NCBI GenBank assembly: GCA_024626585.2
Contig: JANKJI020000001.1
Coordinates: 11,524,736-11,556,278, forward strand
Origin: Ginkgo biloba
Lineage: Eukaryota; Plantae; Ginkgophyta
Direction of reading: 5' to 3'
Length of the DNA stretch: 31,543 bases
A program made the position numbers and the translations under genes. Below, piece by piece: positions 2,048 through 30,075 of the stretch; position 1 is the stretch's first letter, and each line of letters opens with the position of its first letter. Under the pieces are notes generated by a model that saw only the letters and a program-made list of their open reading frames with translations, was not told the DNA's origin and made no database searches.

Positions 2048-2299
2048 TAAATGAACACGTGTGGATCGTGGAACTTGAGGAGATTACCATAGCCGATTTT
2101 GATGAAATCCTTGTGTCTGATATAACTCTGAACATATAATATTGACCTTAATTCGCATACTTCCTTGCCTTCACGTTCCGATGGACCCAACTTTCGTGGA
2201 CAAGATCCAAGCTCTCGGAGATGTACTGTCCAACCCAGATTTTCTCTTAAGTCATGCATTGGATAAGGATGCAGGAATGAAGTTTTATTGTTGCTTCTG

Positions 2300-2341
2300 T
2301 TGCTAATCAAAATTTGAAGCTTTCAATTGACACATGTACAG
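2300..2341 (+). other. Probable branch point and 3' splice acceptor just upstream of the murA ATG (5'UTR intron, or an unseen upstream exon)
   Basis: GCTAAT branch-like motif at ~2302-2307, T-rich context, TACAG ending at 2341, then AGAGAG ATG. Confidence 0.5.
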
Positions 2342-2347
2342 AGAGAG

Positions 2348-3030
2348 ATGTCATTCCATGCATTGGCCTATGTATGCTATTCAAACCATATCAATATACT
2401 GGGGCAATGTACCTTACCTAAAGGTTTCCAATCTGGGTTTTATCATGCCAAGTCCATTTGGAAAGCTTACAGTCAAAAGACCAGAAACCGCACACAACCC
2501 ACAAGTATTGTGGCAACCATTCTCAAATCTGTCGATATAAAAGATCCATCAGACCATTCTTCAGATCAGAGCACTGATGCTGATGCAAAACCTCCTCCAA
2601 GGGTTTTGGCCAATGACAGATTTGTGGTGTCTGGTGGAACCACATTGTCTGGACATGTACATATAAGCGGTGCTAAGAACTCGGCATTGGCAGTTTTAGC
2701 AGGGGCCTTGTGTTCAACTGGGATATCGACGTTGCAGATGATTCCAGATCTTCATGATACCAGAATGATGATGCAAATCCTTCGTTCTATTGGGGTTGAA
2801 GTGCATCGATCTGGTCCTGAAGTGGTAGTCAATGCAGATAATATTAAGTGTGTGGAGCCTTGTTCAGAAGCAGTCAGGAAGCTGAGGGCTAGTTTTTTTG
2901 TTATTGGTCCTTTGCTTGCTCGGCATGGTAAGACAGAAGTTGCTCTTCCTGGAGGTTGTAATATTGGAGCACGTCCCATTGATCTGCATTCGAGAGGACT
3001 CCAAGCACTCAGTGCTCGAGTTGAGATTAG
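2348..3030 (+). CDS. murA: First visible coding exon of a nuclear-encoded, probably plastid-targeted MurA (UDP-N-acetylglucosamine 1-carboxyvinyltransferase); 3' exons not found in window
   Basis: Uninterrupted frame from ATG 2348 with MurA motifs: DRFVVSGGTTLSGHVHISGAKNSALAVLAGAL (Lys at 2675-2677, equivalent to E. coli K22), VRKLRASFFVIGPLLARHG (R91 region) and LPGGCNIGARPIDLH (Cys at 2957-2959, equivalent to C115; R120). Homology stops exactly at ATTAG|GTCAGT (phase-2 donor at 3031); read-through residues to the stop at 3058 are non-homologous. No acidic residue in the first 62 aa. Confidence 0.95.
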
Positions 3031-3036
3031 GTCAGT
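3031..3036 (+). other. 5' splice donor of the murA intron
   Basis: AG|GTCAGT coincides with the loss of MurA homology after ...ARVEIR and is followed by T-rich sequence. Confidence 0.85.
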
Positions 3037-3109
3037 TTCTGCAAACATATTTACATAGTATTTATTTTTTGGAGTAAGTTTTGCAGATTGGAGGTCGGGA
3101 TGGATGGGT

Positions 3110-4445
3110 TGATTTACATTTTTGGGGTGCTAATTGATGATGTTAGCAAACGAAAAACAATCACCATAAGTTTGAGCTTCCCAAGGTGATTGAGGTCCAA
3201 GTTCCCTATTGCTATCATACACACCTAGTACAGAAATGTAAGTTCCTGTATGTCTCTGTGTTTGTGGAAACCGCAATTCCCCTTATCTGGTTCATCCTCA
3301 TTTGGCATCAGGGCTGATTGGTTCCTCCTCCTTGGATTCGGGGCTCATGTTTCATGTGTTTGTTACCTTCTAGAGTACACATACTTGCATATTCTCTTCT
3401 TTTGCGTTCTAAATTGTAGTTTTGAATCTCGATGCTGTTCTGTATAGTAAATAGGGTTGGGTAAGTACCCAAGCCTCGGCATTAGGGCTTGTGTTGTTAT
3501 GTGCCTATTTCCTTTTGCAGCTCAGAAACCTGCATGGTCTTTTACTTAATGAAGTTTTAAGTCTATGCAGTATAGATGTTCAAGTATTAAAAAGGGTTGC
3601 ATTATATGGGCACTAATGGGTAATGCAAAATGAAGAAGAAAAGGAACCTTGAGATAATAGAGGCCAGCTTCTAGTTCTTGCCAAGATTATAGAGAACATG
3701 TTTCAGTTCTCAGATACATCCAACTTTGCTGTTAAAGCTTACAAGTTACTGCATATGATCTTATGTGCCTAATAGCCTATTGCTATTTCAATCATAAAAC
3801 CTTGTATGTTTTTCTATTTACATTATAAATTGTAGTTAAGTAGTATTTTGCAGTTTATGGGCCAGGTGAACAAGTTTAAACATAGTTCACATTTCCTTGG
3901 CAATGCAAAAAGAAGAACAAGAAAAACTGCATGTTAAAGCTTGCCAAGGTGATAGAAGCCTCCTTCGGCATTAGGGCATATGTTACGTGCCTATATCATT
4001 TTCTAGCACATAATCCAAAAACTTTGTGTGTTTTACAATGCAAATGGTGGCGTAATGCTATTCTAGGGGTCATATATCAGATGGTTAAATACTAACATAC
4101 TTTACATTTCTTGGGCACTAACTGGTTATTCGGGAAAACCAAAAGCAAACTGTCTCTCAGCTCTAGCTCCCAAGGCAATTGAAGCCCTGTTCCTATGACT
4201 TTAGGGCCTATACCTATTCTCTTTTTGTGGCATATAAACGTGGGTTTCTTGTAGCATTGTGCATAATAGTTTAATTTTGTTTTGGGGTACTAATGAATAA
4301 CACAAAAAAGGAAAGAAAATAGGAACCATAGTAAGTTTGGGCCTGCCAAGGTGATAGAGGTGAGGTTCCTTGTCAAATACATTGATCACTAGTGCTAGGA
4401 CGAATTTTATTGTGTGCCTATTGCATTCTACAACATACAAGTCTG
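3110..4445 (+). repeat. Degenerate tandem repeat (~175-290-bp units, ~6 copies) at the start of the murA intron
   Basis: Recurring anchor ccaagg(t/c)gat(a/t)ga or a variant at 3181, 3469, 3681, 3944, 4170 and 4346. Other recurring blocks: cggcattagggc (~3477, ~3966), gtgccta (~3501, ~3765, ~3987, ~4414) and ggg(c/t)actaa (~3608, ~4113, ~4286). Confidence 0.75.
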
Positions 4446-5034
4446 TATTTCTTCTAATTAGTTGGAACTTGTATTTCAGTGGTGTTTTGAGGGTTTACAT
4501 TCTAGATGACCAAGCCGAGATCCTTTTGTCCTACAGTATTACTTTATTCTAACACATTATTTTCTTCAGTTTTAGGCCAATAGTTTATTCGTGATGACAA
4601 AATATTTATGTGGTGAGATACTGCATTTTAGAAGCAGTTCATGCATTACACCCTCCAATATTTTGTTATTCTAGCATATCTCTTTTCTAGGCCAGAGTTG
4701 GTTTCTCATTTTTATAGATATTCATGAGCCAACTTTGGTAATTTTAGAACTGTTTCTGCATTTTTTGGGCTGTAGCACTATGTTGTGTCAAATGTTTGTG
4801 CCAAACATGGCACGTGCACCTCTCATCTATCATATCTAATGGAACTTCCCTTATACCATGTGTGAGTGCTTCCACAAACTTAAATAAAAATATTGCCTTA
4901 ATAAGTTTAGGTCAAGGAATTATTTATTGTCATGGGCCACACTATTATCCATCATTAGACCCATATTAGACCTCATATCCTTGGGACACAACACTGTTTT
5001 TTGTAAGACTTTGGGTAACTATAAGATTCATGAC

Positions 5035-5105
5035 TATGTGCAGGTTGGTCAGGAGCATCTTGTATGCAGGTTGAAGAAAGCTCTATATGGGCTTAAGCAG
5101 GCACC
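5035..5105 (+). mobile_element. Ty1/copia reverse transcriptase fragment running into a gap
   Basis: YVQVGQEHLVCRLKKALYGLKQA(P), the canonical copia RT motif VCxLxKxLYGLKQAP. Confidence 0.85.
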
Positions 5106-8100
5106 NNNNNNNNNNNNNNNNNNNNNNNNNNNNNNNNNNNNNNNNNNNNNNNNNNNNNNNNNNNNNNNNNNNNNNNNNNNNNNNNNNNNNNNNNNNNNNN
5201 NNNNNTAATGAATAAGAATCCATCAAACTCCTTGAGGAAATAGAAAAATAAATATTATCAATAGGAATCCCAAAATAAGATTCAAATAAAGGACTCAAAT
5301 CATGGTACCCTATTTTTTTTTCAGAAAATAAAAAGGGTGAATAGACAATGCCTATGAATAAGAGAATAATTACTATAGAAGGAAGTACATATTGAGGAAA
5401 CATAAGGAATAAAATAGAGTCATAATAAAATATTTATTCATTAAAACAAGATACACATAAAGGAGATGGTGGTGAAAATCCACCAAAAAGAGACAAAAAC
5501 TAGACAATCCTCATGATATTGATAAAGTGAATTTCCAAGACGAAATAAATGAACAATCATAAGAAAGTGCATAATCGTAAGCTATTGCACAATGACAAGA
5601 AGATGCATAACCATAAGTGAAAGTGTAAGAAAAAACACCATAGAAAAACATTATGATAAATGAATATGGTACTACATAGGTACAAGAGTAGGAAGAATAA
5701 TAACATCCATCAATAAGGAATAATGCACCACAAGAGGAAGAGGTTATAATGATTTCTAATTATGCAATAGAATAGGTGCATGTATTGGTGCAGCCTAAAT
5801 TTAAGGAAATTAAAGATTCTAAAGTGATTAACTCGATGGTTTTTACACCACTAAAGCATAATGCACACATCAATTTTGATGAAAAAGAGTTCGTAAAACT
5901 AAAGATGATAGTTACTAGGGTGTAAGAGGGGACTCACAAGAAAAAGAAGTTTTGGATTATGACTTAGAGCTTCAATAAATTGAACTTTGACAAAAAATGA
6001 TGACACATTCATGAGTCAAAAACTTGAATAAAAGAGTTTCCAAAATTATTAATATAAAATTGGACCAATACAAAACTAAGTTTTAAGATCTTAAAAATAG
6101 TTTGGATCTCAAGAGGATTTATGTACAGAGGAGGAGATGTCATCTCTAGAGGATGTGTCTCGGGAGGGAAGCCTAGAGGTGACTCAATCTTCTTTAGAGA
6201 TGTTGTCAGCTCAGGCCACACTGAATGATGGTTTATTAGGGTTAGATCAAGGTTCTTAGGGAACTTTTGAGGTGCAAATTGATGATGCTTATTTGATAAG
6301 TTCTTAACAAACAATGCCACTTACGACTCCATGTTCAATCTAAGTTGAGAGGGGCAAGTCATGGAATTAGAAGTCTCAAGATGTTCACCAAAGGATCGTG
6401 CCATTACTGTTATAAAACTCACATCTGTAGAAGATATAAGGGAATCTATTTGAACTATAATAATAATGACTACTCTCATGATTCTTAGATTCTAATGAAT
6501 GATAGGACTAGGAGGTCGTCTAACAACTATTGGGTTAACAATTGCTTCCAATATCAGTTATCTATTGAAGAAAATCCACCTTTTCCCTCAATGCTATAAG
6601 ATCCTAACAATCCATGTCATGGATCTACCTAGTATGGGTGATAATAAAAAATATTACCATGTTGTGGGCACACAATGCACGTCATTTGTCTTAAATTATA
6701 ATGGAAGTTGTTGAGGCTCCACATTTTTATGGGAGAATATATCATGTCATTGATATATGAGATAATGGCAAGCCTCTACGTGTTAATAATTTTTGCATAC
6801 AACTTCTATTTCAATTATTATGTGTGGTTGTTTGGTGTCATCTATAATGGGTTTCAAACATTTCACNNNNNNNNNNGTCAAAGTGCATCAACAAAAAATA
6901 TCAATTTTAAGGTAAATTTGAGCTCAACTATATTCTTTGGAAAAAGTGATGGATAATCATGCATCGCAATGTGAGTGTCTACGATCATTAGTGGTTACTA
7001 AGCTAGATGCACTTTATAATGAGTAATTTAATGAGAAGCATACGTGTGTGGATCCTCATCAGTACCATAAGCTATACTATAAAAGACCTTGTAGAAGTTG
7101 TTTGTGGGATACTTTTTTACATAATTTGTGTCCTTTGCATATTGGTATACTTTGGTGCACAAATACCTAACAAGGGTGATTAATTATCCATCACAGAATA
7201 ACTATAAAATAAGAATTGTCACCATGTTTATGGGCATATTTCCCATCCTTTTTTGGGATAACGTGTAGGTTGTTGAGGCTCTACAATCATATTAAGATAC
7301 ACATTGTATTAGTTAGATGTTAATCAAATAATGGTAATTCTCTAAATGTCAATGAAATTTTAGCTAATGGATTGAGATGATCATCCCAAATTCCAATCCA
7401 TGCATAGGACATCCATCCTAATTATTATTTGTTGATTTAGTATAAATTATATTAGGTTTCCATAGACTTGTCATGTATGGACAAAAACCTTAATTTCTAG
7501 ACAACTATGAGTTTGGTTGTCTTTTTTATAATTCCATTATTTCAACATCATACAACACTATGTGAGTGCTNNNNNNNNNNNNNNNNNNNNNNNNNNNNNN
7601 NNNNNNNNNNNNNNNNNNNNNNNNNNNNNNNNNNNNNNNNNNNNNNNNNNNNNNNNNNNNNNNNNNNNNNNNNNNNNNNNNNNNNNNNNNNNNNNNNNNN
7701 NNNNNNNNNNNNNNNNNNNNNNNNNNNNNNNNNNNNNNNNNNNNNNNNNNNNNNNNNNNNNNNNNNNNNNNNNNNNNNNNNNNNNNNNNNNNNNNNNNNN
7801 NNNNNNNNNNNNNNNNNNNNNNNNNNNNNNNNNNNNNNNNNNNNNNNNNNNNNNNNNNNNNNNNNNNNNNNNNNNNNNNNNNNNNNNNNNNNNNNNNNNN
7901 NNNNNNNNNNNNNNNNNNNNNNNNNNNNNNNNNNNNNNNNNNNNNNNNNNNNNNNNNNNNNNNNNNNNNNNNNNNNNNNNNNNNNNNNNNNNNNNNNNNN
8001 NNNNNNNNNNNNNNNNNNNNNNNNNNNNNNNNNNNNNNNNNNNNNNNNNNNNNNNNNNNNNNNNNNNNNNNNNNNNNNNNNNNNNNNNNNNNNNNNNNNN

Positions 8101-10938
8101 NNNNNNNNNNNNNNNNNNNNNNNNNNNNNNNNNNNNNNNNNNNNNNNNNNNNNNNNNNNNNNNNNNNNNNNNNNNNNNNNNNNNNNNNNNNNNNNNNNNN
8201 NNNNNNNNNNNNNNNNNNNNNNNNNNNNNNNNNNNNNNNNNNNNNNNNNNNNNNNNNNNNNNNNNNNNNNNNNNNNNNNNNNNNNNNNNNNNNNNNNNNN
8301 NNNNNNNNNNNNNNNNNNNNNNNNNNNNNNNNNNNNNNNNNNNNNNNNNNNNNNNNNNNNNNNNNNNNNNNNNNNNNNNNNNNNNNNNNNNNNNNNNNNN
8401 NNNNNNNNNNNNNNNNNNNNNNNNNNNNNNNNNNNNNNNNNNNNNNNNNNNNNNNNNNNNNNNNNNNNNAAGTTCATCTTATTATGTCTCCTTTCTCTCT
8501 CTCTCTTTAAGGCATTAGCTTTTAAATATGGTTATTTAATATCAGTAACAAAATTAGGTGAGATATAGACACACGCAAAAGGAAAATGAAAAAACTAATA
8601 TGATTTTAGGTCAAGAAAGTAATAGGAGACAAAATAAAAAAAGAAGATTGAAAATAAGAATAGTATCCCAAAAGAAGTTTAAAAATAAATTAATCAATAT
8701 GCAAAAGTATAATAATTATATTATGATAATGTACGACAAAAAGAGCTGATGTTTCGAAATTGATTGTATGTGGATGAATTTGATCATTTAAGTATGAACA
8801 AATTTGTGTAAATCTATTTGGTAGAGAAAATAAATTTTACGTGAGTTATTGTCTGTTTAAATACTATTCAATTTAATACTATGCATATAAGGGTTGTGAA
8901 GTTATTTAGGGGTTTTATTACTCCTTAACTAAGGATTGCATAATGTAAGCCAAATAGCCATAAAACAATGCAAACACTTCTATGAGGATTTCATGCAAGG
9001 CACAAAATTATCATGAATAGGCTTCTAAAGTTGTCTTACTTATTTGTTGATAGCTTTTTCCTTGCTTCCTTATCATTTTAATGCTCCTAAATGTCGTCTA
9101 ATAAAATCTACATGCAAATTTGATAAATAAAACCTACTAAAGAAATTCCATTCCTAAGTTAATAGGATTAGGATGAATGCTAAATAAACATAAGAAAATG
9201 CCTTGGAAATGGGAAACAAATAAAGCAAGATGCCTTTATGAGCTTGGGGACATAATAAGAGGGCAAATTTGGAGTAACCTTACTAAGCCCAAATGAGTCT
9301 CGTTGACAAGGAGACTCGCTCTTCTTCCCCTTCAAGCTCCTAATATAATAAGACAATGCACAATATAAGAAACTCAAAAACTGGAATGAGGTTTTCACCA
9401 AACCCTGAAGAAAGATATGCTTCTATTAATGTAGAATGGAAATAAAGCTTGAGATGAATGAAAGATTATAATGCCAGTAATATCATTCCTTACTTATGCC
9501 TTCCCTTCCTTTTAAATCCTTAATCACAAAATCATATACATTTAAGATGTATAAAGCTAACTTACCAAAAAGTCTCTTTTAGATTCTTTTCATTACATGC
9601 ACTATATTTAACATTATTCCTTTATATGCATCTAATAAAATAAAAATATGAATAGTGTTGGAAAGGGCCAAACATTTACATAATAGGTTTTTCTTATTTT
9701 TCCTAAATAAAATGTCTGAAAAAGATTGATTGTCTTCCTCAACAATGGTTGTTAAAACCATAGATTTTTCATACCACACTTACAAATACCATGGCATGCA
9801 TACTAAGTTTAATGAAATTACTATCCATTTACCAAACAAAAGTCAAGTGAAACTAATTGACTAGAGGTCACATTGGGAACTAAAAATGCTTGCTTAATGA
9901 ATGTCCTATACTCATAAGTCAAAATCTTTTTTAGCAGCTTTTGCTGCCAAAGAAGTTGTTGATGTGCCATCTTAACCAAGAAGGAGCTAGTACATAGTTC
10001 TATAGAGTTAAGCCTATTGGGGGCTATGACCAAAGGGGATCATTGGAGAGTNNNNNNNNNNNNNNNNNNNNNNNNNNNNNNNNNNNNNNNNNNNNNNNNN
10101 NNNNNNNNNNNNNNNNNNNNNNNNNNNNNNNNNNNNNNNNNNNNNNNNNNNTTGTTTGGTTTGTCTTAAGTTCTTTTTGGATTTACAAACTTAGTGTTGT
10201 ACTATCGGATGTATATTATATTTTCTCTATAGTTAATGTTTTGAATTTTAAATTTTGTATAGTCCTTTGTAGCGAAACTCCTGTAGTTCCCCTGGCAGTA
10301 TTTTTGTAAAAGATTTGAGGACCTTTCAACACCCCTTCTACCTTAATAAAAAAAAAATAACTCTCTAGTTCTTGCTTCTTCTACTTATAGCTTTAAGATT
10401 AAGCTTGTAAAATCAAATTGAAAGTTGAACCTCATATGGGTAGTAATTCTATATACTTCAATTAATTATTTTGTTCTAAAGGATAAACTTTGTAAATTAG
10501 TGTACCGTGATTCCACTTCCAAGCTTTATGTAAGTTCTACATAACAACTTATTTTCTTTCTTTAATAAAGTAATCTCTTACATATGAGTGCAACTTATTT
10601 ATATGATTTGTGCTTGTTTTAATTTACTTGTACCATATGCATGCTAGGATCTTGATCATATTTTGGTATTCGATCCTTAATTTTAGAAATTCTTAAGTAT
10701 GTAATTAAAGAATTGAATGGTTTGGATGCATTCTATGTACTAGGAAGAAAGAGAGCTACTTGTGATGTACCCACTTGGTAGTTGGAAGATTTCCATATGT
10801 TTACAGATGCATGATTGAAAATCTAAGGGGGTAATCTACTTTCTTAAACCTTTGTACTCTCTTTATTTTGGAATAAAGCTCTCTAGTCAAACTGTACAAT
10901 CTATACAACTTTCTATTTATCAAATTCTTGTAATACCG

Positions 10939-11646
10939 TGTTAACATGTGTGATATCAGTCAATATAATAGAAATATGTGCACTTGGAGAACACACTCAC
11001 ACAATACCATGTCTATGTGGTGAACTCTCACGACACGNNNNNNNNNNNNNNNNNNNNNNNNNNNNNNNNNNNNNNNNNNNNNNNNNNNNNNNNNNNNNNN
11101 NNNNNNNNNNNNNNNNNNACCTATCCTATGAACTTGTTAAATCACCTGCAAGATATCCTAGATGATATTCTATACACATATGATGATTTACAATATAAGA
11201 TCCATCCCCATCAAACAAGATTCCAAGATAAATTGAAAGACATAAACCATTTACAAGCTTTCAGACAAATAACCAAATTCCCTTAATTCCAATTGCAAAT
11301 TACAAAGAATACAAGATCAAGAAGAAGGTAGAAGATGCATGAGGAGAAACNNNNNNNNNNNNNNNNNNNNNNNNNNNNNNNNNNNNNNNNNNNNNNNNNN
11401 NNNNNNNNNNNNNNNNNNNNNNNNNNNNNNNNNNNNNNNNNNNNNNNNNNCACAAACACACAATGGCCATAATAAAACATTAAAAACACAATATATAAAG
11501 AGAGGAAAAAAAAAGGAAAAACAATGAATCGATTCTATACTACCCACCTCACCCAAACCGGTTCGCAGTTACTATGCCTCAGTTTATAGGTCCATCTATG
11601 GGGATTAGAGTAACGATTGTGGATTTGTAACAAGCGACCTTCAACA
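10939..11646 (-). mobile_element. Possible LTR (interrupted by gaps)
   Basis: Bounded by TGTT...AACA, with a degenerate antisense tRNA-Met PBS-like stretch (tcttgtaataccg) on the left. No TSD identified. Confidence 0.3.
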
Positions 11647-11751
11647 ATTAGAAAACATCAACGCCAAACATCCATCTCAACCCTCTGCAAGATGCTTCCC
11701 TACCTATTAGCACATATTATTTAAAATATAAGGATAGTATATTAACTCAAA

Positions 11752-11856
11752 AGACACGAAAGGAATGCATAAGGAAGGGGATAATCATACCTCTCATGTC
11801 TGTCCACTCGTACCTAAATTAACTTTGGAGACACGAGAGGAATGCATAAGGAAGGG
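11752..11856 (+). repeat. 28-bp direct repeat pair
   Basis: agacacga(a/g)aggaatgcataaggaaggg at 11752-11779 and 11829-11856. Confidence 0.9.
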
Positions 11857-12159
11857 ACTCTGCTTGTGGTGGCGCCATCCATACTCAACTTAGCCATAAC
11901 AAATCGCAAAAGATGGGCTCCTATAAGTCTGCAACAAATAATGCTATATACATCAACATATATCATATAGAAAATAACTGACATAGAAAAAATTATATCC
12001 ATTTTAAAGAAAAAATGTAAAGATTTGATGTCAGTATATTGCTAGATTCAATCACACCCATAACTTCATATCCACTAACATTGTAAAGAAATTAAACTTG
12101 AAATACCACCAACATATGAACCCCTTAATGGAAGAGGTTACGAATAGAGACCTATATGA

Positions 12160-15100
12160 ATGTGACTCATTCATTCTTAAAGACTTATTCTAAATAGACC
12201 AATACTAAGACCAATATGACTCTAAGATAATTCCCCTAAGTAAACATGATATTGTCCTACGATAAAAAAGGCTATGTGATTGAAACCCTCATATGGACTC
12301 AAAAGAGAATATGATAAGAGTATATATTGAAGGAAAGATATTTGAACTAAAAAGAGAATTGTGGTTCCTAGCATAAGATATTGTCTTAGTTATTCAAGTT
12401 GTCAAGAATGTATGATGAGAAGTTAATGTACAAGCATCCTTATCAGACCATCAGGAGAGATTAGTATTATGAACCAAGTTATGCAAGTATCCATTTCTTA
12501 GCACATATAGAAACATATTTTTGGAGGAATTATCAACTTCACTACTACCTAAACAACAAGTCACCATGCCACCCAGTTAGCTTAGGGTTAAAACTAGTTT
12601 CTCGACTGCCATATTAAACCTCATTCAAACATATAATTGAAATTTCAAAATACTTAGAGGATATTACTAAAAAAAATTACATTTGACCAGGTGGAAATCT
12701 ATTTGGTTGTCTAGTTGTAATTGTAAAAAAGATGGATGGTTCAATGGGGTTATGCATTGACTATAGGGATATTCATAAAATGATAGTTAAGAATATATAC
12801 CCACACCTTTTATTGAATACCTCCTCAATGAACTATAAGAAGAAAAATTATTCCAAAAAAAAAAATCTCTAAAGTGGCTACCATCAAATTAGAATAAAAG
12901 ATAGGGATGAATATAAGACAACATTATGCACTAATTACACCCATTACAAATACCTAGTAATTCCCTTTGGTCTCACTAATGCAATGCACAAATTCATAAA
13001 CCTCATAAATGAATTATTTAGGCCTTATATCAATATATTTATTATATTAAATTTATATAATATCTTAATCTNNNNNNNNNNNNNNNNNNNNNNNNNNNNN
13101 NNNNNNNNNNNNNNNNNNNNNNNNNNNNNNNNNNNNNNNNNNNNNNNNNNNNNNNNNNNNNNNNNNNNNNNCTCTAATTTTTTACTCTATATTGTTTATT
13201 ATTATGATAACACTCGTAAATCCTAAATAGATCTTTCCAAATCATTTTAGATAATATAATTACCATAAAATATAATTTTTCTCAAAAGAATCTCCATGAA
13301 TGTGGTAAAATAATAAATAATCTTAAAATATAAGATCGTGGCCAATCATAATCGTCATAATAAAATAAATATGTAAGAATAATAGATAATATTCTCAAAA
13401 CAATACTAAAAAAACTAAGATTCTAGAGATTCTAGAAGCACCTACTACTTAGAGATATCTAGGGTGGGAGCATCTTCTATCGACAAAGTTCAATTAGAAA
13501 GTACTTACTTCTAAATAGAGATATTTCCTTTTGAGAGGAAAAATTATAAATGCTTATGATGAGATGATAATGAAATGAATAAATATAAGGCCTTGCATAT
13601 AATAAACATACATGAATTAATCTTTAACACTTATAGGTTGACTAAGATATCATTTGGGCTCTAGATTGTACCACAAGGCTAATAACTTAAGTTCCCATCA
13701 AGTTGACCTAAACTAAGATGAATCAAGAGTCCTATGTGCTCCTGGAATTATCTCTATTATAATACTAGTTGTGTCTTAGTGACACAACAACTTATAATAA
13801 TAAATAATCTACATGGGTTTAGAAGCTTCATGGTTTTGGCCAATTATCTAAGAAAGTTTGTTATGGGCTATTCAGAGCCAGGCTTACCCCTTAATGCTCT
13901 AACAAATGGGATGCAAATTTTATTTGGTTAGAGAGAAAATAGANNNNNNNNNNNNNNNNNNNNNATATATTTTGAGAATATTAACTATATAATAAAGAAT
14001 GACCTTATTTTTTCATTACCTAATATCAATACCATTTTAGATTTAAGTTAATGCATTAAGACATAACCAAGTAATAATATTGATCTAGTAGGGAAAATAA
14101 TTTGCCTACCATTCCAATTTTTTTTTAAAAGTTATATAAGGATAATCTACTTGTAATAAGGAAATGTATGCATTAGTACAAGTATTAAAGAATTAAAAAA
14201 ACTATTTTATTATCAAGGATATCATTGTACATTCTTAGCATAGGTCAACTTAGTATTTGGAGACTCATTCCAAGCTATAAAATAACATGCATCACAAATA
14301 GGTCACTTATCAGTTGTAATTGAACATTGTNNNNNNNNNNNNNNNNNNNNNNNNNNNNNNNNNNNNNNNNNNNNNNNNNNNNNNNNNNNAGAATTATTAT
14401 TATATTTTAAGTATTTTGATAAAAAATGATCTATTTGAATTTAATGTCTTTAAAGGTCTTTATAAGGATAATAAAGACATGGCATGTATACATTATATAG
14501 TGCATTAACCAACAATAATGTAAGAGGAGAAAATAAGATATTACATCTTAAATAAAATATTTTGTATAATCTCAATGATTTTTTTTCCCTACAAACTCAT
14601 CTAATTAGAGAAACACACCACTTTAAGGTGGTAGGGCATTTTAGAGTGTAAAGACTCTATTTAATTTATAGATATTATTTTATTAGCCTGTGATAGCCTA
14701 ATATGTTGTAATATTTATCAAGGTACACATGAATTATGTTACATTTATAAGTTTACTAATATAAAGTTAGGAAATATAGGTATTATTCCATCTCATTTAT
14801 GGAATTTAATCTCTAAGGATTTCCCTAGAAGATTNNNNNNNNNNNNNNNNNNNNNNNNNNNNNNNNNNNNNNNTTGACTACTTTTTTATAGTACTAAAAA
14901 GGTTTAGTAAAATTATTGTCCTAATTTCCTATAGAAAGTTTATCATAGGGAAAAAATCAACAAAATAATTCTTTAATCATACTTGGGAACACTTTGGATC
15001 ACCCACTCCCATCATCTCAAATAAGTATAACGTATTTCATATCTACTTTTGGAAAACTTTATGGGCTCATGGATACCATGCTAAGGATGAGATTTTTTTT

Positions 15101-15935
15101 CATCCATAGACTGATGGATTGTTATAAGTTACTAAGAGAATAGTTGTATAAATCTTAAGTATATATAATCATAATCATACTAAGACATAGGATGAAAGTA
15201 TCCCACATATCTAACATAGTTATGATATAACTATTTACAATTTGACTCAATTTTTTACTTTTGAAACTTGTTTAGGATTTTTTTCTAAGGATCCCATTAT
15301 TATAAGTATTAATCTACCATAAACTAGTTCACTCAAATAAAAGGATACCCTATAACAAACAATAAAACTTTTCAAACATATCAATAAGGTATAGACGTTG
15401 TGAAAGAGACATTATTGAAGAATTGATGAAAGTTTAAGGCTAGACATGAGATGCATAGAGTTTATCACTTTCTCTAAGTGGGAGATATAGTATTGATTCA
15501 CCTATCCAAGGATTTATTTTAACCTATAAATGAATATAATTAGGTATTTACCATTTTTCATTTCAAATAAAATAGGAAAAAAATTATTTTAATCTTGATT
15601 TACATCCATACATGGGAATCCACCCAATGTTTAATGTTGATAGGTTGAATCTCTATAAACCCTCTATGCTATATGGAGAGGAAGAAAAATATAAGGTATT
15701 AATATATCCATATAAATATATAATTTCAAATGTTAGTATCCATTGGAATAGTATTCTATTTTATAAAATGTAAAGAGGACAACTAGACAAGGTACCATAA
15801 AGTTATACAATTGGTAGAAAAGGGAAACTATCCCAAGAATGAAAATGGTTCACAGAGGAGTATATGAGAAAGGAATTTTCTAAAATCATTAAGTATATTA
15901 TGTATGACACTATACTTAATGGATTGAGGTATGAT
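12160..15935 (+). mobile_element. Decayed Ty3/gypsy pol (RT-RNaseH-integrase)
   Basis: Frameshifted relics: VKKMDGSMGLCIDYR (~12722), SGYHQIRIK...YKYLVIPFGLTNA (~12873-12983), RSFMVLANYLRKFV (~13821), KEMYALVQVLK (~14158), integrase H...VVGHF (~14615-14642), HP*TDG (15101-15118). Domain order RT-RH-INT indicates gypsy. Confidence 0.88.
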
Positions 15936-17655
15936 ATGGGTTGGATATAAAGTATAAGCATGATTGTCAACTTCAAATTCATAATTTTAAGAAATCTATA
16001 ATCTTATGAAAAGCCATAAAATTAATCTAAGAAGATTGTTGTGTCTAGTTGTCATGACCAATACCAACATTACCAATGTTTTATAAGGGTAAAAGCCATT
16101 AGAAAGGTATATTATGTATATACCAAATCAATATATGGATAATTTTCATTAAGGAGTAAAGCTAGTGGAGAAAATTGTAAGATAATAGAAGATTTTGTAA
16201 AAGTATAATATGTTATAACAAACTCAAACAAACACTCGTATTCAAGAAATTTATCCATCAATATAATACATGATAAATCAAATAAAATTAGTAATTAATA
16301 ATCTACATATAAAAAGGTTTTATAATCCCACATGAATTTGATAAAATATTACCTTTGTAAGATGGATATCAGCCAAAGTTGAATCAAATTTAACTTTATA
16401 TTAGTGTAAGTTATTAAGTTGAGAGGAGTTATAGAAATATAAGAATTCCCAAATGTGAAATAAGTAGTGCACAATGAAGAGTTTCCCTAAATATAAAAAA
16501 CATAATTGAGGTTTTATCTAATCAAAAGGTCTAGCTCATATTATTTAGAATATTTGTATTGTCTACATATTATTTTTATCATTATATATATGGAATTATT
16601 TCCCACATTTAGGAATAATTCATTTCTTAAAATTAGATTCTTTAAATTAGTTACTTGTAACTCCTCTCTTGATTTCTTTTATTCTAACTAGTTCTTCTAA
16701 AAAACTGATGAAGAAGAATATATGAAAGGTCTTCAAAATTAACTACATGTCTCTCTCACGCTCTCTCAAACTTCTTGGTTTGAGAGACCTTTTTGGAGTT
16801 TCTTCCCAAACATTGGCAAACCCATGGTCATAGAATTTCCACTCAAGTTTTGGTTCATATTTCTACATAGAAGGTATCCTTAGATTTCATTACTAATTTT
16901 ATCAACACATAGTGCTTTCAAATGTATGAAATGGTTCTACAAAGTAGTAGGCCTTAGAACTAATAGAGAAAGATGTTTTTCCTTCTCCACTTTCTACCTA
17001 ACTAATCTTCAAATTCAACTATGTACTTTATGTGAATTTAATGTACATTACCAAGGATTTTTTTGTGCATATTATGCTGTGTTTATTCATTTATGTAATC
17101 TTATTATAGATTTTTAATGGTAGCATGGATAAATATTTCTTTACAATGTGTGTGTACTCCTATAAGTGTATTTCCTAATCTATCTTTTCGCTCTTATCCA
17201 ACATAGAAGATTAGGTCTCTATCTCACAACATAAGGTTTCATCATATGGATTAAGTTCACTCTCTTCTTCTTAAATGCTTTTATTATATTATGTAGTGGC
17301 ATACATGCCTACTCACTAATTAGTAGATGATTAATATTGATGTGAAGTGTTTAAACATAATAAATAATTNNNNNNNNNNNNNNNNNNNNNNNNNNNNNNN
17401 NNNNNNNNNNNNNNNNNNNNNNNNNNNTTCATAAAGAGTAATTTTACGTTTACTCTTTCAAACATTTGTTACATAGAAGATGAATTTTTTATATCTCTAT
17501 GCACTCCTCTAGTTCTCACTACTTGTCAATAGAATTTTTTCCTCCTATACTTCTTGAAATATTTTCTATATATTTAGTTTTTTCATGCAAATGCATCGAT
17601 TAAGCCAAGTTTATATGTGTCTTTAAAAACATTAAATTTCTACATAAAATTGTGT

Positions 17656-17787
17656 CACTCATACTAAATCAATGTACATTTATGCATTATGCATTAAAGT
17701 ATATCATTCATACTAAATCAATGCACTTTTATACATTGTGAATAAAAGAATCCCACTTACACTAACTCAGTGCACTTTTATGTATAG
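17656..17787 (+). repeat. 49-bp minisatellite, ~2.7 copies
   Basis: cactcatactaaatcaatgtacatttatgc (17656), cattcatactaaatcaatgcacttttatac (17705), cacttacactaactcagtgcacttttatgt (17754). Confidence 0.85.
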
Positions 17788-18899
17788 ATTGTTATACTGA
17801 TTCAGTTTCATTGGTATAACTTGGAATACATTTTTTATTTTTTATTTTTAAATGCCAAAAACATTTATATTTTTTAACATAAAAAGTGTATTTTTATCTG
17901 CATATTGTTAATTTTTTATGAACTACTCATAGTTCTAGTTTTCTACACCATTGGAAATAAAAATTTAAAAAATATGATTTCTTNNNNNNNNNNNNNNNNN
18001 NNNNNNNNNNNNNNNNNNNNNNNNNNNNNNNNNNNNNNNNNNNNTATCTCCTATCAAATAGATTTTTTATTATTATTTTGTTTGTCTTTCCTACTAATTA
18101 ATTAAAAAAATATAGAAGAAAAAAAAAATATTTTTATATTCATGTTGTAAATTCAATTTTTTCCTAACATTTTAAAAAAATTATAGTACTACCCAATAAA
18201 ACTCACTTCTTCACAAACAATACACCTAAGCCTTAAACAACTAATATAGAATTTGTAATTAAAAGGAACTAGCACAAGAGGGGATACACTAACAACATAG
18301 GTTAACATGGCATGCAAAGAGTATATACTTTTCCCATTAACCAAAACTAATGGGAGCATAGAGTTAGCTTAGGATAATTAGGCCCTAGGTAGGAAGTCCT
18401 TGGTATGATTTGGCAATTAGGAGACCCCTTAAGCAAGGCCCAAGGCCTCTTAAGAGAAACCTAACATATACGAATTAGATTCACCCAATTTTTAAAGCCT
18501 TCAAAGGTGACTTAGACTTATATATGAGTCCTCATAATCAAATGTAAAACTTGATTTAGCCTACTAACTTAGTTTTCACCACCAAGTTGGGTTATTTTAT
18601 TCCACATGGGCTACTTGGATTTCATCAGAAGATTTCCCATGTCCCAAATCTTATTCATTATATCTAACTGAAGGTCATAACCATTATTTATCATTAGATA
18701 CTTAAGAGACTTTAGGATTCCCAAGGCATATATAATCCATCACTAGGCCTTGAATTACATTTTAATTAAATGGAAAAAAATAAAATTAGACTTTAAACCT
18801 ATACACTAGCCTTTATCTATTCTAGTCATGTGTACTTATAATAGGGTAATTCTTATTTTCATCATCCACTTAGCTTCCATCAACCTTCCATCTCACCAT

Positions 18900-19900
18900 A
18901 TGACTCTTAGCTACCATCAACTAGTTGTATAACTATATAATAAAAAAAGCTTAAACCTCTGACTATTATGCTATGATATCCTTAGACACCCATTATCTAA
19001 TTCATAAGACCATCCTTGTTCTCATAGTCCATTTGGATACCATTGGCTACAATTTTTTCACATCACTTTTAACTCATGCTTAGGACATAGCTATAGATTG
19101 CCACTACTAATCCACATTGTCCCNNNNNNNNNNNNNNNNNNNNNNNNNNNNNNNNNNNNNNNNNNNNNNNNNNNNNNNNNNNNNNNNNNNNNNNNNNNNN
19201 NNACCAACAAGTAGATTATCAAGTCAAAATTGGCTTGATTTACATTCCTTACCACTTGAAAATAATGCAGTTGTCCCTATACTTATTTGACCCCCAAATA
19301 ATTATTACATAATTAAATAACCTACAAAACATTTAGCCCACACTCATGAAGTCTTATTAGACATTCCCTCCTTCTCATATGTTATTTTTAGTAATTTGCA
19401 TTTCAACATATACTTCTTAATCCCAATAATTCTACTAATGAGTTGGTTCCTAATGTTTTATAACATGGTACCATNNNNNNNNNNNNNNNNNNNNNNNNNN
19501 NNNNNNNNNNNNNNNNNNNNNNNNNNNNNNNNNNNNNNNNNNNNNNNNNNNNNNNNNNNNNNNNNNNNNNNNNNATATAATATGGCATGGAAACCTTATC
19601 AAAATATTATGTTTATTTACCATGATCAAATGGTATGGTATTAATCACATAGTATGCCAAATTTTAAAAATAACATAGAGATCCAACAAAATAAATGGCT
19701 TTGACAGATCACCAACTAAGAGTGAGTTCAATAGGTTTATAGTGTAGTGTAATATACTTAAAAAATTACCAAAGGATATAAATTAGTAAATAGGTCCAAC
19801 ATTACATGGATACCATAAAATTTCCAATCAAGTCTAGCTCATCCTCCACATCAACTCATATACCATGTGGAAAATATTTGCATCCTCCATCTTTAGCTAA
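18900..19900 (-). mobile_element. Possible highly decayed L1-type LINE ORF1 relic
   Basis: Minus-strand fragments LIGNF (~19830), NFDL (~19230) and QMDYEN (~19035) occur in the order expected for plant L1 ORF1; weak. Confidence 0.25.
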
Positions 19901-21949
19901 GAAGTTGAAACACATAGTTCTATAACTATAGTGATTCTTATAGTTATAAATATTATAAAAGTTCACTATATTTCATAAGTGAGGTTTCCTTTTAGTTACC
20001 AGTAAAATACCCAATGCAATACAAGTCTAATATGATTCCCCAGTTCTTCCTTCTTCTACTTCTAGATCTAATCTTAAGCTTATATTCTACAAATTGTAAG
20101 TTGAAACTATGCAAGGAAATAATTCTATGAACTCTGATAAACTATCGTATTATGATGGATATTAATAATTTTAAATTAATGTACCTTAATCACTCTTCTA
20201 ATCTTGATGTAATATCTATAGAGCATCTCATTTTCTTTATTTAATTTAAAAACAATATTTTACATATGACCACAATTTTTTTTATTTACCTTTTTTGTAT
20301 TTGTATATCTATATTGAAAATGCAACATGTTTATTGTTATTATGTGAATTTGGTTCCTTATATCACATATTTCACACATGTTATAGTTAATTTGATACAT
20401 CATCAATGCCACAATCATAACCTATTATGTTATATTACTCCATTTCACTACCTATATTGTATTAACATGCCTCAGTGCTACATTAATCTCATTCATTTAC
20501 AATATTCTCCCTAATATGGCCCTCTTATTCTCATGAGTATTATATCATATGGCCATTTATATGATCATTTATCTTTCCAAATGGTCCTTCTTCATACTAT
20601 AGACTATGGACTTAATCACATGAATGTTGTTTGATTAGTATATTTGTACTTCCTTATATTTTACATAGATTTATGAGTTTCTCTTGTGACACAATTGGAC
20701 AATAAAGAACCATACACATCATTATATACATCAANNNNNNNNNNNNNNNNNAAATATGATCTTATGAATTGGAGGTGATTATTTTGGCTAAAGTAATACA
20801 CCATGTGGAACATCATAACTTTTCACTACGATTGAGATCAAGAGGCTTATTTTGTCATATAAATATCCCCTATTTATAAGGTAAAAATGAGGGAATATAT
20901 TAATAGAGATTGAAGACTTGGATATATAATTAGTCTTGTATGTCATAAAGCATAATCATGGATTTATACTTTGGCATTCGAAAGTCATTCAAACCATTTA
21001 TTTTGGCATATCTACTTTCACAACGAAGAATGAGAGGAGGATGAGAGAATGATTTCTACCCATTCAATTCTAAGATCCTCATTTGGAATGACCACTTATA
21101 TTTTATTTCCACCTTATATCCATTACTAAAATAATTTATTCATTGTCAAACACTTGGTGGATATTATCATTATTATCTTTTATTATTAAAGTTGAGGATT
21201 TTTGCATGCACTCATATATTTTCCTTTGGAACATATTTTTCCTTGTCTTTATTTTCATTTAGTATTACATGTATCATTATCATTCAAGGGAAATCATCTC
21301 ATACCATCAAGGGAGTAAGAAAATCAAAGAAAGAACATCACTCTTATATAAAGACCTCTTCCCCAACACTCGTTCATATTTTCTATGTTATAAATAGTTA
21401 TTATATTATCCTATGTTCATTATCATTAGAGGTAACTATATATAACATAATTAGTGACTGTACTAGGTTTTTTCTAAGTAATGTTGCTACAATCCTCTAT
21501 GTATTATTTGTGTGTAGTTTTTTTATTGTAGATTTTTCACTTTATTTCATTTTCCACCATGCCATGGGTTTCATAGTGATATGACACCCTTTTCCCATAT
21601 AATTCTCCTTTTCAGTACTATAATGTAGCTCCTTTTATAAACTATGATATGATACCTTTTTTTTACTATGATTCCNNNNNNNNNNNNNNNNNNNNNNNNN
21701 NNNNNNNNNNNNNNNNNNNNNNNNNNNNNNNNNNNNNNNNNNNNNNNNNNNNNNNNNNNNNNNNNNNNNNNNNNNTACACAAGTAAGATAATTTTGTGCT
21801 CCTCTAAAGATTCCTAGGCCTAACCATCAATCCAACCACATGAACTGCAAAGAGATATACCTTGTAACCATAAGAAGAATCCCAATGCATATTATATTTT
21901 TTACTTCATATAGGAGTTGGAAGTAGTTCCTTCTATAATTTATCTTTTG

Positions 21950-24900
21950 GATATTTTACACATAGGTCTGACCAAAGAGACTAACTATTATAACTTTTAA
22001 ATATGGAAGAGACACCTCTTGATAACCTTATTGTGTTTGAACCATCAATTTTCAATAAGGAGATCTCTATTGTATCAAATATATTCCATATCATGGTGCA
22101 TGTAGTCCATATAAAATTATGGAGGTGAATTATTGATGAAGGTTATAAAATCTCAATAATGTCATAATCTACTTTTAATACCCTAGGATTTTCTGACATT
22201 AGTCCTAGTTCTTACATAATTAATGCTTGGGATAATACCTCAAGAGATCATTTTGGTACCCTTAGGATTTTACCAATTAATTTTGAGGGTAAGATAATAT
22301 TTATCAATGTGGAATTCACTAAATTGACCTTTAATATATTATACTTTAGGAAGAAATTGGATCATCCCCATGATAGTAGTTATGCCATCATTATATGGCA
22401 TGATTAAATTTACTTTTAATATAAGAATGATGAAAATAATGATAATATCAATTATAACTCTCATGTTCCATTCATTGGCATTCAACTAATCTCTTCTCGA
22501 CCACAAGTCATTTTGGTTCATAAGTGGATATTGATCCTCCTAATAGACACCCACATCTACATTATATGATACTTTGATAGTTTTGGTTCAATAATCTATA
22601 CTGAGTAACATTGAGATATCCTTATAATTTGGTCCTAGACTCACCAAGTTTCCTCCTAATTTTGATTTCATGATTGGATATTTTCTTAGAGATTCTCTAA
22701 AAGAGGGTCCTTAGTCATGCATGGTGTGTTTGTAGATATTGATTAATCTCCTACCTTCGGGAATTTTTAAAAATAATAGGAAATTCCTTGACTTTATATA
22801 TATAAATGAATATTAATAGAACTAATATCATCATTATAACAATCAATCTCATTATATTTCATCATAAGGAATACTTTCCTTCTTCTCACCTTCCCATGAG
22901 CCCATATTTTATGTTAAAAATAAGAGTGTCCTTCAACCTGACATTTAATCCAAGGAAGAAATTTACCTCATGTTGTTGCTACCTTTAAATATGTTAATCC
23001 CATTAATATTAGTGATAATGGACCCATTAACATTTACAAAACTAACAATCTTGTATATATTCCTATTGGAAATTATTATACTCACTAAGAGGAGGAATAA
23101 TTNNNNNNNNNNNNNNNNNNNNNNNNNNNNNNNNNNNNNNNNNNNNNNNNNNNNNNNNNNNNNNNNNNNNNNNNNNNNNNNNNNNNNNNNNNNNNNNNNN
23201 NNNNNNNNNNNNNNNNNNNNNNNNNNNNNNNNNNNNNNNNNNNNNNNNNNNNNNNNNNNNNNNNNNNNNNNNNNNNNNNNNNNNNNNNNNNNNNNNNNNN
23301 NNNNNNNNNNNNNNNNNNNNNNNNNNNNNNNNNNNNNNNNNNNNNNNNNNNNNNNNNNNNNNNNNNNNNNNNNNNNNNNNNNNNNNNNNNNNNNNNNNNN
23401 NNNNNNNNNNNNNNNNNNNNNNNNNNNNNNNNNNNNNNNNNNNNNNNNNNNNNNNNNNNNNNNNNNNNNNNNNNNNNNNNNNNNNNNNNNNNNNNNNNNN
23501 NNNNNNNNNNNNNNNNNNNNNNNNNNNNNNNNNNNNNNNNNNNNNNNNNNNNNNNNNNNNNNNNNNNNNNNNNNNNNNNNNNNNNNNNNNNNNNNNNNNN
23601 NNNNNNNNNNNNNNNNNNNNNNNNNNNNNNNNNNNNNNNNTTACATCCTTTAGGATGGCTAGCTCATTCATTACTTCCTATAGAGAATTTTCCATAATAG
23701 AAAGTCTAGTGGTAGTAATAAATAATATTTTCTTGATGAGGCGATGTAAGTTTTTCTTGCCTTAGAAAGATGATAAATATTTTAATTCAATATGGTAAAA
23801 CTCCTTCCCTATAGTGGTTATACAACTTGTTGGTTAGTTTTACATGGGGGATGCATGAGAAAAGAGCTTAAAAATGCTAAATTTCTTTGGATAATATTAT
23901 CCATGAGGGCTATGAGGGTCTGAAATACATATGGAACCCATTCACATGTAGGAGTTTTTTAATGATATGAAATGGTGGTGTATTAGGGATGGTTTTGAAA
24001 TGATTAAGTCCATCATGGTGTTATATGTATCCAAACTAGTTGATATGTTCATCTTGATGTTGGCTAAATAATATTCAATTAGGTTGTTAGCCCAAGGCAT
24101 TTGCTTGAAGGTCACATGATCAAAGGATCTTATAAGGTTTTAGGATTAATTAAGGAGGTCCTTGAGGTACTGTGAGAATTTAACCTAGGTCTTAAAAATT
24201 TAGTTAAGGAATAGAGTCGATTCCTCCTATAAGAGGAGATTTCTTATCCCCATATCTTTTGAGAGATTTATCCCTCTCATTATAACTGCATATTCTGCAA
24301 AGTTGTTTATCAACTTGCCAAGTCTACAAGCAAAAAGGTTCACTGCAAGTAGAATTAATGGAAAAGAAACTTTAGGCATAGGAAGGTCCAACAAACATAG
24401 TGAAGGAGCACCTAAAAACAAAACCCAATGAAATGAAAATAGCACTTTCTCTATCAATACAAAAAAAATATGTTTTGCTACAGTTGTTGAATATGCTTCC
24501 AATATTCCATAGAAAAATGTTAGGGCATCAAATGTTAGATTTAAGTATCATTTTTAGTTTTTTAACGATTTGGAGATGGCTCCAATAAATTTGTCTTTTA
24601 GATAACTCTTTAAAAGGAAAGAAAAATAATAGGGAAATATATATCCTTGTGATATATTCTTAGAACATTAATGTTCCCCAAATGGATAAAAAANNNNNNN
24701 NNNNNNNNNNNNNNNNNNNNNNNNNNNNNNNNNNNNNNNNNNNNNNNNNNNNNNNNNNNNNNNNNNNNNNNNNNNNNNNNNNNNNNNNNNNNNAGCCATC
24801 CTCTCGGTACAAGTACTAGCCTCCCTCATGAGGATCGAAGGCACATCAGACTCTTAATATAATTCTCTATAGAACCATTGATGAGAATATAAGAGATTAG

Positions 24901-25374
24901 AATATAAAGAATTATTTTCCATTGTGGTCATATCAACTAACTTCCAAATTTGTAATAGGCTTCACCCCATTTTCACTTATCTATGAAGGAAAAGGAGTAC
25001 TTTCCATTGAAGTTAAAATATCATTGATGAGGATAAAAATTTAAATCTAATTATATCCTATAGAGGATTATGTAGTTAGACTTTTAAAACATGAAGATCT
25101 TGAGGAAGGTCATCTTGGAGCATTATAAAACCTTGAATCATATACAAAGATAATCAAAGCATCTTAAAATAGAAAAGTGGTTCCTTGATCATTTAAAGAA
25201 GGTGAACTAGTCATATATTTTAATTAAGCTACCAATAAAATAGGTCCTAGATAGATTAATGCCTATTGGTTATTTTTTATCATCATTAATGAAGTCTTAA
25301 CAAGATGTTATTACAAGTTATCACATATGGATCAAAATTTGTTTTCCAATACAACCAATGGGAGTTCGCTCAAA
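21950..25374 (+). mobile_element. Decayed Ty3/gypsy (Tat/Ogre/Athila-like) gag-pol relic
   Basis: Protease-like IIDEGYKISIMS*STFNTLG (~22129-22188), LGRNWIIPM...MIKF (~22346-22412), integrase C-terminus GFTPFSLIY...VLSIEVKISLMR (~24958-25032), SFKEGELV (~25189), PTNG-like end (~25352-25374). Confidence 0.8.
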
Positions 25375-26026
25375 ANNNNNNNNNNNNNNNNNNNNNNNNN
25401 NNNNNNNNNNNNNNNNNNNNNNNTTCCCCCTTGTCTAACTTCTCCCATTTATTTATCAAATATTTAAAGAAGGGGGTAGTTTTATTCACTTTTATATAAC
25501 TAATTTAATATGTTCCATATTCAAAATATTTGGCATATTATTTATCTAGATTCATTTATATACTTGTGCATTAATATGATCCATAGTTATTTAAGATGCA
25601 TATATCCATAACATTATATAAATTCAACAAAACTAGACTCAAAATGATATATAATAAGTTATAACATGTATACAAAATGGAACAACAAACTAGAATTATT
25701 ATCATATACATCAAAATGGTACAAATGTATATCAATATATAAAATATACACGAGTCATGATATGGTATGTATGATAAGAAATACCTCTTAGTTATCCTTA
25801 AAACATAAAATATGAACATAAAAGTAAGAGTTAAATATATACATAACCACCCCTAAGGAATCTACCTAAACTTAGTACAATTTGAGTGACTCTCCTTAGT
25901 TCATTAGGATCCCTCCTATCTATAGACCATAAAGGTAAGGACATGGCACCTATGTCATGCTCCCATAGCTCCCTCTATGATGTGCGATCCTAACTAGAGG
26001 GGGCTAGTAGATGGTCCTATGGATTC

Positions 26027-26051
26027 AAGCCTATTGGGGGCTATGACCAAA
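26027..26051 (+). repeat. 25-bp exact match to 10010-10034 (dispersed repeat, probably LTR-element derived)
   Basis: aagcctattgggggctatgaccaaa at both sites, with looser similarity ~25 bp upstream (gctagta...ctat); both lie at or near gap edges. Confidence 0.85.
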
Positions 26052-27504
26052 NNNNNNNNNNNNNNNNNNNNNNNNNNNNNNNNNNNNNNNNNNNNNNNNN
26101 NNNNNNNNNNNNNNNNNNNNNNNNNNNNNNNNNNNNNNNNNNNNNNNNNNNTGAGAAGAAATTTGGATTAGAGTTGATGAAAATAAAAAATACTATTATC
26201 ATTAAAATTTATCTCAAAATGGATCCATTTATACCATTAAAAGGGAAAATTAAAGAAAATTATATTTTTCCCATAAGTTAATGAAAAAAATATTTTTAGA
26301 AGCCAAATTTTAGACTATATCATACTGACATCTATCTCCATAATCTCTCTAAAAATAAGGTCCCGAATCTACNNNNNNNNNNNNNNNNNNNNNNNNNNNN
26401 NNNNNNNNNNNNNNNNNNNNNNNNNNNNNNNNNNNNNNNNNNNNNNNNNNNNNNNNNNNNNNNNNNATAACAGTCTAGATAAGGAAGGATAGAGGACAAA
26501 GAGAATAGGGAAGTTTATTTTGTTCCCCTAGAAAAGATTATCTATCTTGTAAGACTCTTTTTATCTCTAATCAAAGAGAGAAATATGATCAAGAATATAG
26601 AGAAGGTTGAATTTAGGAAGAGAACTAAATTAGCAAGAGAGAATGCAATTGAGAAAACTAATTGAGAAGGACTAAATTAGAGTAAGTTCTAGATAGAGAA
26701 AAATATAGAGGATCCCATGAAATGTAAGAACTTAGATAACTGAGACCAATTTTATAGAATTTATGGGGAATAAAATCTTATACTTATTGTGTAAATCCTT
26801 GTGATATGTGACTCAAGAATAGAGGCATAAACACAATATGATGTAATCCTTTGATGGGTTTGTCATTTTAATGAATTTTGGAGTTTTTATACCCTAAGAG
26901 GGTTTTCTCCAATTAAAAACATGTTGTCTTTTGTGTAATAATTTCATGTGGTCTTTTAATTATTTTAGTTCCTAAATGTTATGGGTTTAAGTGATAATAC
27001 TTCCTAAAATTTACAAACATAGAATTTATTTTGCAGAATCTATTATAGTGCCATTAGGATATTTTGACTCACCCACTANNNNNNNNNNNNNNNNNNNNNN
27101 NNNNNNNNNNNNNNNNNNNNNNNNNNNNNNNNNNNNNNNNNNNNNNNNNNNNNNNNNNNNNNNNNNNNNNNNNNNNNAAACCATTGTGATCGATGGTATA
27201 GATCACCCACTTGAAGTAACATATGGGAATATAGAATCCTTGGATAACTTTGTAGGTGGAGACATAGGGTTTTAAATAAAGGGACCTTATTAAGATTTTG
27301 CCAGATTTTATTCATAGTGATTAGGAGGACTTCACTCCTCCTATACTAGTGAATATTTCACAAGTGTTGGAAGAAATAATTAAGTATTATATTATTCCTC
27401 AAGANNNNNNNNNNNNNNNNNNNNNNNNNNNNNNNNNNNNNNNNNNNNNNNNNNNNNNNNNNNNNNNNNNNNNNNNNNNNNNNNNNNNNNNNNNNNNNNN
27501 NNNN

Positions 27505-27960: not shown

Positions 27961-28030
27961 ACACATCTACCTATTGCAAACTGCGACCAAATCTATTCCG
28001 TTGAAAACAACATTAGTAGANNNNNNNNNN

Positions 28031-29975: not shown

Positions 29976-30075
29976 NNNNNNNNNNNNNNNNNNNNNNNNN
30001 NNNNNNNNNNNNNNNNNNNNNNNNNNNNNNNNNNNNNNNNNNNNNNNNNNNNNNNNNNNNNNNNNNNNNNNNNNN

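Follow-up and report, generated by a model that had tools for sequence, protein, structure and literature searches.

The window, which is the whole stretch of 31,543 nucleotides of Ginkgo DNA that we analysed, carries near its left end an open reading frame on the forward strand (2327..3058). The preliminary description of this DNA had reported an uninterrupted MurA frame, and indeed 227 codons plus 2 bases run from the ATG at 2348 to 3030 without a stop. The spliceosomal signal that it had reported is also present, as a canonical donor (AG/GTCAGT at 3030/3031) at the position where exon 1 of moss MurA ends. The boundary at 3030 is phase-2, and the MurA frame of an unspliced transcript would meet a stop at 3056-3058. 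Judging from its family matches and its relatives, 2348-3030 is the first exon of a nuclear gymnosperm MurA orthologue. The features of the locus are as follows.

2250..2347 (left limit approximate), + strand: probable 5' untranslated region, from the polyA reads of run X24
2348..3030, + strand: coding sequence of nuclear MurA exon 1, from the open reading frame, MurA family matches, leader homology and RNA depth
2348..2614, + strand: leader of ~89 residues, putative plastid transit peptide, from homology to gymnosperm MurA leaders
2615..3030, + strand: MurA enzyme residues 2-140 (E. coli numbering), from profile and structure matches
2675-2677, + strand: codon of the Lys22 equivalent, from alignment
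2957-2959, + strand: codon of the catalytic Cys115 equivalent, from alignment and 6q03
3031..3036, + strand: splice donor of intron 1, GTCAGT, from the sequence, the moss-like intron position and the RNA drop
3037..31543, + strand: either a putative intron 1 or sequence placed here by scaffolding and unrelated to the gene; rich in AT, derived from repeats and interrupted by 26 N runs
4927-5105, + strand: Ty1/copia reverse-transcriptase fragment with a KKALYGLKQA motif, cut by an assembly gap, from translation of the open reading frame
28031-28561, + strand: NPH3/NRL-family fragment, from Pfam PF03000 (E 6e-31, profile positions 1-112 of 258)

MurA is UDP-N-acetylglucosamine 1-carboxyvinyltransferase, which carries out the first step of peptidoglycan synthesis and is the target of fosfomycin in bacteria. 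Exon 1 matched NCBIfam TIGR01072 at E 4.4e-43 over profile positions 3-140 of 416 (exon residues ~90-227), PRK09369 at E 1.5e-44 and Pfam PF00275 at E 4.8e-30. The MurA models scored 140-152 bits (E 1e-41 to 1e-44), above the sister enzyme AroA (EPSP synthase), for which the aroA profile reached 22.5 bits (E 4e-5). The scores stayed below the whole-protein MurA cut-offs of 297-552 bits because only one third of the protein is encoded by the exon. Among solved structures, 32 chains deposited as MurA matched at E 1e-24 to 1e-34, and NikO matched at 2e-14. The AKN, RAS, PGGC, and GARP motifs were conserved in a 27-row alignment, the PGGC motif with the catalytic cysteine aligned with that of 6q03, and the equivalents of Lys22, Arg91, Cys115, and Arg120 were all kept. 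We take the Cys115 equivalent to be the cysteine that attacks phosphoenolpyruvate. A complete MurA has two domains and ~420 residues, the active-site residues of its C-terminal part being the equivalents of Asp305 and Arg397. The exon had been described as the N-terminal half of MurA; it does hold the N-terminus, but ~140 of ~420 residues amount to the first third. Bacterial MurA (E. coli 1UAE, Clostridioides 6Q03) belongs to the same fold family, has the four catalytic equivalents in common with exon 1 and is ~45-50% identical to it, but has neither leader nor introns.

The leader at 2348..2614 gave no MurA-family match in the profile and structure searches (Pfam, NCBIfam, solved chains). It aligned from residue 5 with the gymnosperm protein P0312, which has 526 residues and is encoded by uninterrupted ~2.5 kb transcript contigs, and from residue 38 with Cryptomeria P0314. 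The alignment with P0312 from residue 5 onward indicates that the ATG at 2348 is the orthologous start. The leader is probably a plastid transit peptide, as suggested by the DeepLoc predictions for the Mur proteins of Picea abies (PMC12681378). Upstream of the start, the first polyA reads of run X24 fall in the 2201-2400 bin, and the variants at 2310 and 2330 are present in these reads. An out-of-frame ATG was observed at 2334, 14 bases before the MurA start, which opens a frame of 68 codons (2334-2540, +) overlapping that start. Since RNA reads cover 2334, this codon would serve as an upstream ATG in the MurA transcript.

Protein comparisons placed the exon among gymnosperm sequences. The best matches were P0312, with 65% identity over almost the whole exon, and Cryptomeria, with 70% on residues 38-227 and 86% on the enzyme domain. 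Identity on the exon-1 domain was 84-86% to Cryptomeria, 77-79% to P0312, 66-68% to bryophytes, 58-62% to angiosperms, and ~50% to cyanobacteria. In a maximum-likelihood tree of this domain the Ginkgo exon grouped with the seed plants (97/91), outside the clade formed by angiosperms (100/99), nearest to Cryptomeria and P0312 and with a terminal branch of ordinary length (0.13). The gymnosperm MurAs, namely Cryptomeria SUGI_0752570 (P0314) and P0312, have the same leader and catalytic motifs as the Ginkgo exon and belong to the same clade. The tree and the leader homology thus confirm the earlier assignment to a seed-plant nuclear MurA and narrow it to a gymnosperm one. PaMurA of Picea abies (cDNA LC777194, PMC12681378) is counted with them among the closest known systems, the sequence comparison itself covering Cryptomeria and P0312. 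A full-length MurA protein of the same species was not found by exhaustive and word-index protein searches.

Angiosperm MurA (Nelumbo, Magnolia, Nymphaea, Camellia, Musa, Macadamia) is likewise nuclear, leader-bearing, and retained in seed plants, but forms its own clade at the identity given above. Some angiosperm models were short or partial: P0165 of Papaver californicum has 181 residues and P0169 of Victoria cruziana has 398. These two may be truncated models or decaying copies. Victoria and Nymphaea shared a long branch in the exon-1 tree.

MurA is a bacterial-type enzyme, and cyanobacterial proteins scored E ~1e-33 against the exon, which would suit a contaminant of bacterial or cyanobacterial origin, or DNA recently inserted from an organelle or a bacterium, in place of a plant nuclear gene. 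Against such an origin, gymnosperm MurA proteins have leaders homologous to that of the exon (89 residues), the spliceosomal donor sits at a conserved plant intron position, the exon is far closer to Cryptomeria than to cyanobacteria, and the tree places it within the seed plants. In addition, the exon is flanked by plant repeats, to which a 13 kb contig joins it without interruption and with equal depth. The probability of a contaminant or recent bacterial insert is thus negligible, and this origin was excluded.

The position of intron 1 was compared with moss-like contigs (L001 and L002) that carry MurA in six exons over ~7 kb. Exon 1 of both ends at Marchantia residue 190, the same position as the donor at 3030, and in the alignment the position of intron 1 is conserved between these genes and Ginkgo. 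Bryophyte MurA (Physcomitrium patens MurA1 and MurA2, Marchantia P0276), 66-68% identical to the Ginkgo exon, likewise has intron 1 at the identical position. Whereas the moss-like genes place all six exons in ~7 kb, no exon follows Ginkgo exon 1 for 28.5 kb. Relative to P0312, the Cryptomeria protein P0314 has ~47 extra residues (residues ~205-251) exactly at the junction of exons 1 and 2. These are probably a mispredicted exon boundary or a retained intron in the gene model, and the insertion marks the same intron position in a conifer.

Expression was examined in the raw reads of run X24, a polyA RNA library of which ~6% was read. The locus received 53 reads, almost all of them within ~2250-3030. 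The depth was ~12-15 on 2601-3000 and fell roughly six-fold, from ~12 to ~2, at the donor; ~3 reads lay just within the intron and none in the next 4 kb. Exon 1 is thus transcribed into polyadenylated RNA, and the drop at 3030 is consistent with use of the donor. No junction read or loose end was found at 3030 among reads placed at a 95% likeness limit. The RNA donor individual differs from the reference at five sites in 2977-3011, all within the final 55 bases of exon 1 and none of them covered by an X24 read. The lack of junction reads is probably caused by these differences, which push such reads under the 95% limit, and the RNA profile fits a probable splicing event at 3030. Two further runs, X14 and X18, were rejected as RNA, because both cover the intron and the upstream sequence alike and are DNA. 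Run X1 is DNA of the assembly source or of a near-identical plant, with a 13 kb contig that shows zero differences over the region. Of the "intact, spliced" gene announced in the preliminary description, what holds is a transcribed and intact exon 1; exons 2-6 are absent from the 28.5 kb that follow, and splicing is probable.

Comparison with the P0312 cDNA by the Nei-Gojobori method gave a dN/dS of 0.126 for the catalytic part and 0.343 for the leader, with dS ~1.0 and hence near saturation. These ratios support the contrast drawn earlier between an intact exon and its eroded surroundings, the value of 0.13 on the catalytic part being not near 1. To judge from them, purifying selection has acted on exon 1 during most of its history. 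In runs that bear the label of this organism, differences from the reference amounted to ~1.5-3.3% over 2300-3260. The differences were densest in the leader, with 10 in 160 bases, and X18 has a 12-base deletion after 3067. This divergence is high for one species, and the samples may come from divergent populations or from a mislabelled sister species. All eight within-species variants in the leader were nonsynonymous; of those in the catalytic part, five were synonymous and four nonsynonymous. The reference allele has T196, S215, S222, and K195 where Cryptomeria and P0312 have A, L, G, and E. When polarised with P0312, it is the reference allele that is derived at A196T, L215S, and G222S. All 25 other aligned sequences have A in column 196, G in column 222, and L, V or I in column 215. 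The alternative allele, carried by other individuals, is canonical at the three positions, and the X24 RNA confirms this for codon 196. These replacements hint at a weakened reference allele. Private replacements at columns conserved at 95% or more were also counted as a possible pseudogene signal. The reference allele has two, Aquilegia three, and Ananas two; since this is within the range of annotated plant MurAs, the count is suggestive only and was not taken as such a signal.

Exons 2-6 were not found in the 28.5 kb downstream by permissive tblastn with moss, liverwort, charophyte, angiosperm, and gymnosperm MurA (25 representatives; Marchantia, Chara, Closterium, and Victoria; and two gymnosperm proteins), and MurA residues past ~140 are encoded nowhere within the window by the same search. 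Two weak collinear hits, at 5710-5769 and 6704-6787, were rejected: one is interrupted by a stop, each extends across a known intron position, and better chance matches came from a control with the reversed window (E 0.63). The N runs at 5106-5205 (100 bases) and 6867-6876 (10 bases) are bridged by X1 contigs with nothing between the two sides, and these gaps are spurious placeholders of zero true length. Because the first two gaps hide nothing, intron 1 is at least 4.5 kb long. The first gap able to hide an exon is a run of 899 N at 7571-8469, which is too small for exons 2-6 together. The retroelement context noted in the preliminary description is real but thin, consisting of the copia reverse-transcriptase motif at 4927-5105 in otherwise AT-rich, decayed sequence with 26 gaps. 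This copia repeat is of high copy number, with a depth of 149-641 in the 5001-5200 bin. The NRL fragment that had been placed near the exon is a real PF03000 match but lies 25 kb away. The match stops after ...MELERLLKRQ, a 10-N gap lies just upstream of the fragment, and no further NPH3-like sequence was found in the last 3 kb beyond 28561; the piece looks like a truncated gene fragment and not a whole gene. A 49-base tandem repeat (2.8 copies, 78% matches) was observed in AT-rich surroundings at 17644-17781, and Rfam and tRNA scans over the whole window gave no matches.

The missing exons could be explained by an intron (intron 1 or a later one) of more than ~20-28 kb, by a break in the scaffold, or by loss of the 3' exons. 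Published work favours a long intron or a scaffold break over exon loss: introns of more than 20 kb loaded with Ty1-copia elements are numerous in gymnosperms (PMC9364684), and the Mur genes of Picea abies were present only as fragments in the assembly until RACE gave full cDNAs (PMC12681378). With a probability of roughly 0.7, we interpret the locus as exon 1 of a transcribed gymnosperm MurA that is most likely spliced to five exons beyond the window. The exon would encode the leader, as a probable transit peptide, together with the first 140 residues of the enzyme, and the donor at 3030 would join five further exons located outside the window. These may be out of reach either because intron 1 exceeds 28.5 kb or because the gap-rich short-read scaffold breaks the gene. 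Splicing, the remaining exons, plastid targeting, and enzyme activity are what we infer, whereas identity, lineage, selective constraint, transcription, and the conserved intron position were observed. Several observations count against this interpretation, namely the absence of exons 2-6 from 28.5 kb as compared with the ~7 kb of the moss genes, the presence of an NPH3 fragment on the same strand at 28 kb, the lack of junction reads, the three derived replacements of the reference allele, and the lack of a full-length protein from the same species.

The scaffold itself may be at fault, in that the contig with exon 1 was joined to unrelated repeats while the rest of a compact gene lies on another scaffold. 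From ~5.1 kb on, contigs of 1-2 kb follow one another, separated by 26 N runs, and the long X1 contig, which is free of errors, stops at 5094 inside the high-copy copia repeat. Against this reading, 3031-5094 is contiguous in an independent contig and is already without exon 2, and X1 contigs bridge the first two gaps to at least 7200. Intron 1 is therefore at least 4.5 kb regardless of the scaffolding, and the long-intron picture holds at least in part. An artefact of this kind is possible but clearly less probable than the gene continuing beyond the window. Slightly less probable again is a relic, in which only exon 1 survives, at least in the reference haplotype, the 3' exons having been deleted or rearranged in an eroding pathway, and in which the promoter still fires to give a truncated or aberrantly spliced transcript. 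The missing exons 2-6, the three derived replacements, which lie at conserved positions and are confined to the reference allele, and the few RNA reads that continue into the intron would fit such a relic, and Gnetum, which is reported to keep only MurE and MurG fragments, shows that loss occurs in gymnosperms (PMC12681378). However, the long-term dN/dS of 0.13 and the 227 codons free of stops and frameshifts amid eroded sequence are not those expected of a relic, and the RNA drop argues for use of the donor. Moreover, the two private replacements are within the angiosperm range (Aquilegia 3, Ananas 2), and gymnosperm genomes typically have long introns and Mur genes in fragments. We regard it as rather improbable that the window represents a lineage in which MurA is reported missing or plastid peptidoglycan synthesis is being lost, with canonical and weakened (T196/S215/S222) MurA alleles segregating. 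If this were true, the alleles would form a natural series in which to study the remaining roles of Mur genes in seed plants.

The preliminary description had presented MurA in a seed plant as remarkable, which does not agree with what is already known. Full-length cDNAs of eleven Mur genes including PaMurA, together with MurE enzymology, were reported for Picea abies, and parts of all Mur genes were found in Pinus taeda, Thuja, and Sequoia (PMC12681378). The full Mur toolkit was described in Thuja, Asparagus, and Citrus (PMC10784329), and Asparagus and Citrus were credited with nine Mur genes, without the bifunctional PBP (PMC12681378). No MurA was reported for Pseudotsuga menziesii, and Gnetum montanum is the species in which only the fragments mentioned above were found (PMC12681378). 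In moss, MurA is needed for chloroplast division according to knock-out work, as cited in PMC12681378. Our protein searches also found annotated MurA in Cryptomeria, Taxus, and dozens of angiosperms, including Nelumbo, Magnolia, Nymphaea, Camellia, Musa, Prunus, Theobroma, Gossypium, and Coffea. With MurA already well documented in gymnosperms and many angiosperms, the Ginkgo exon is ordinary.

The question at stake is whether seed-plant plastids still make peptidoglycan, and to this the Ginkgo exon adds little. Its modest value is that of a further gymnosperm orthologue for which constraint and transcription are documented, and of an example of how a giga-genome may stretch or break a compact six-exon gene. 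It also provides two alleles from within a species, distinguished by three conserved residues, with which one could test how much MurA activity the plant needs.
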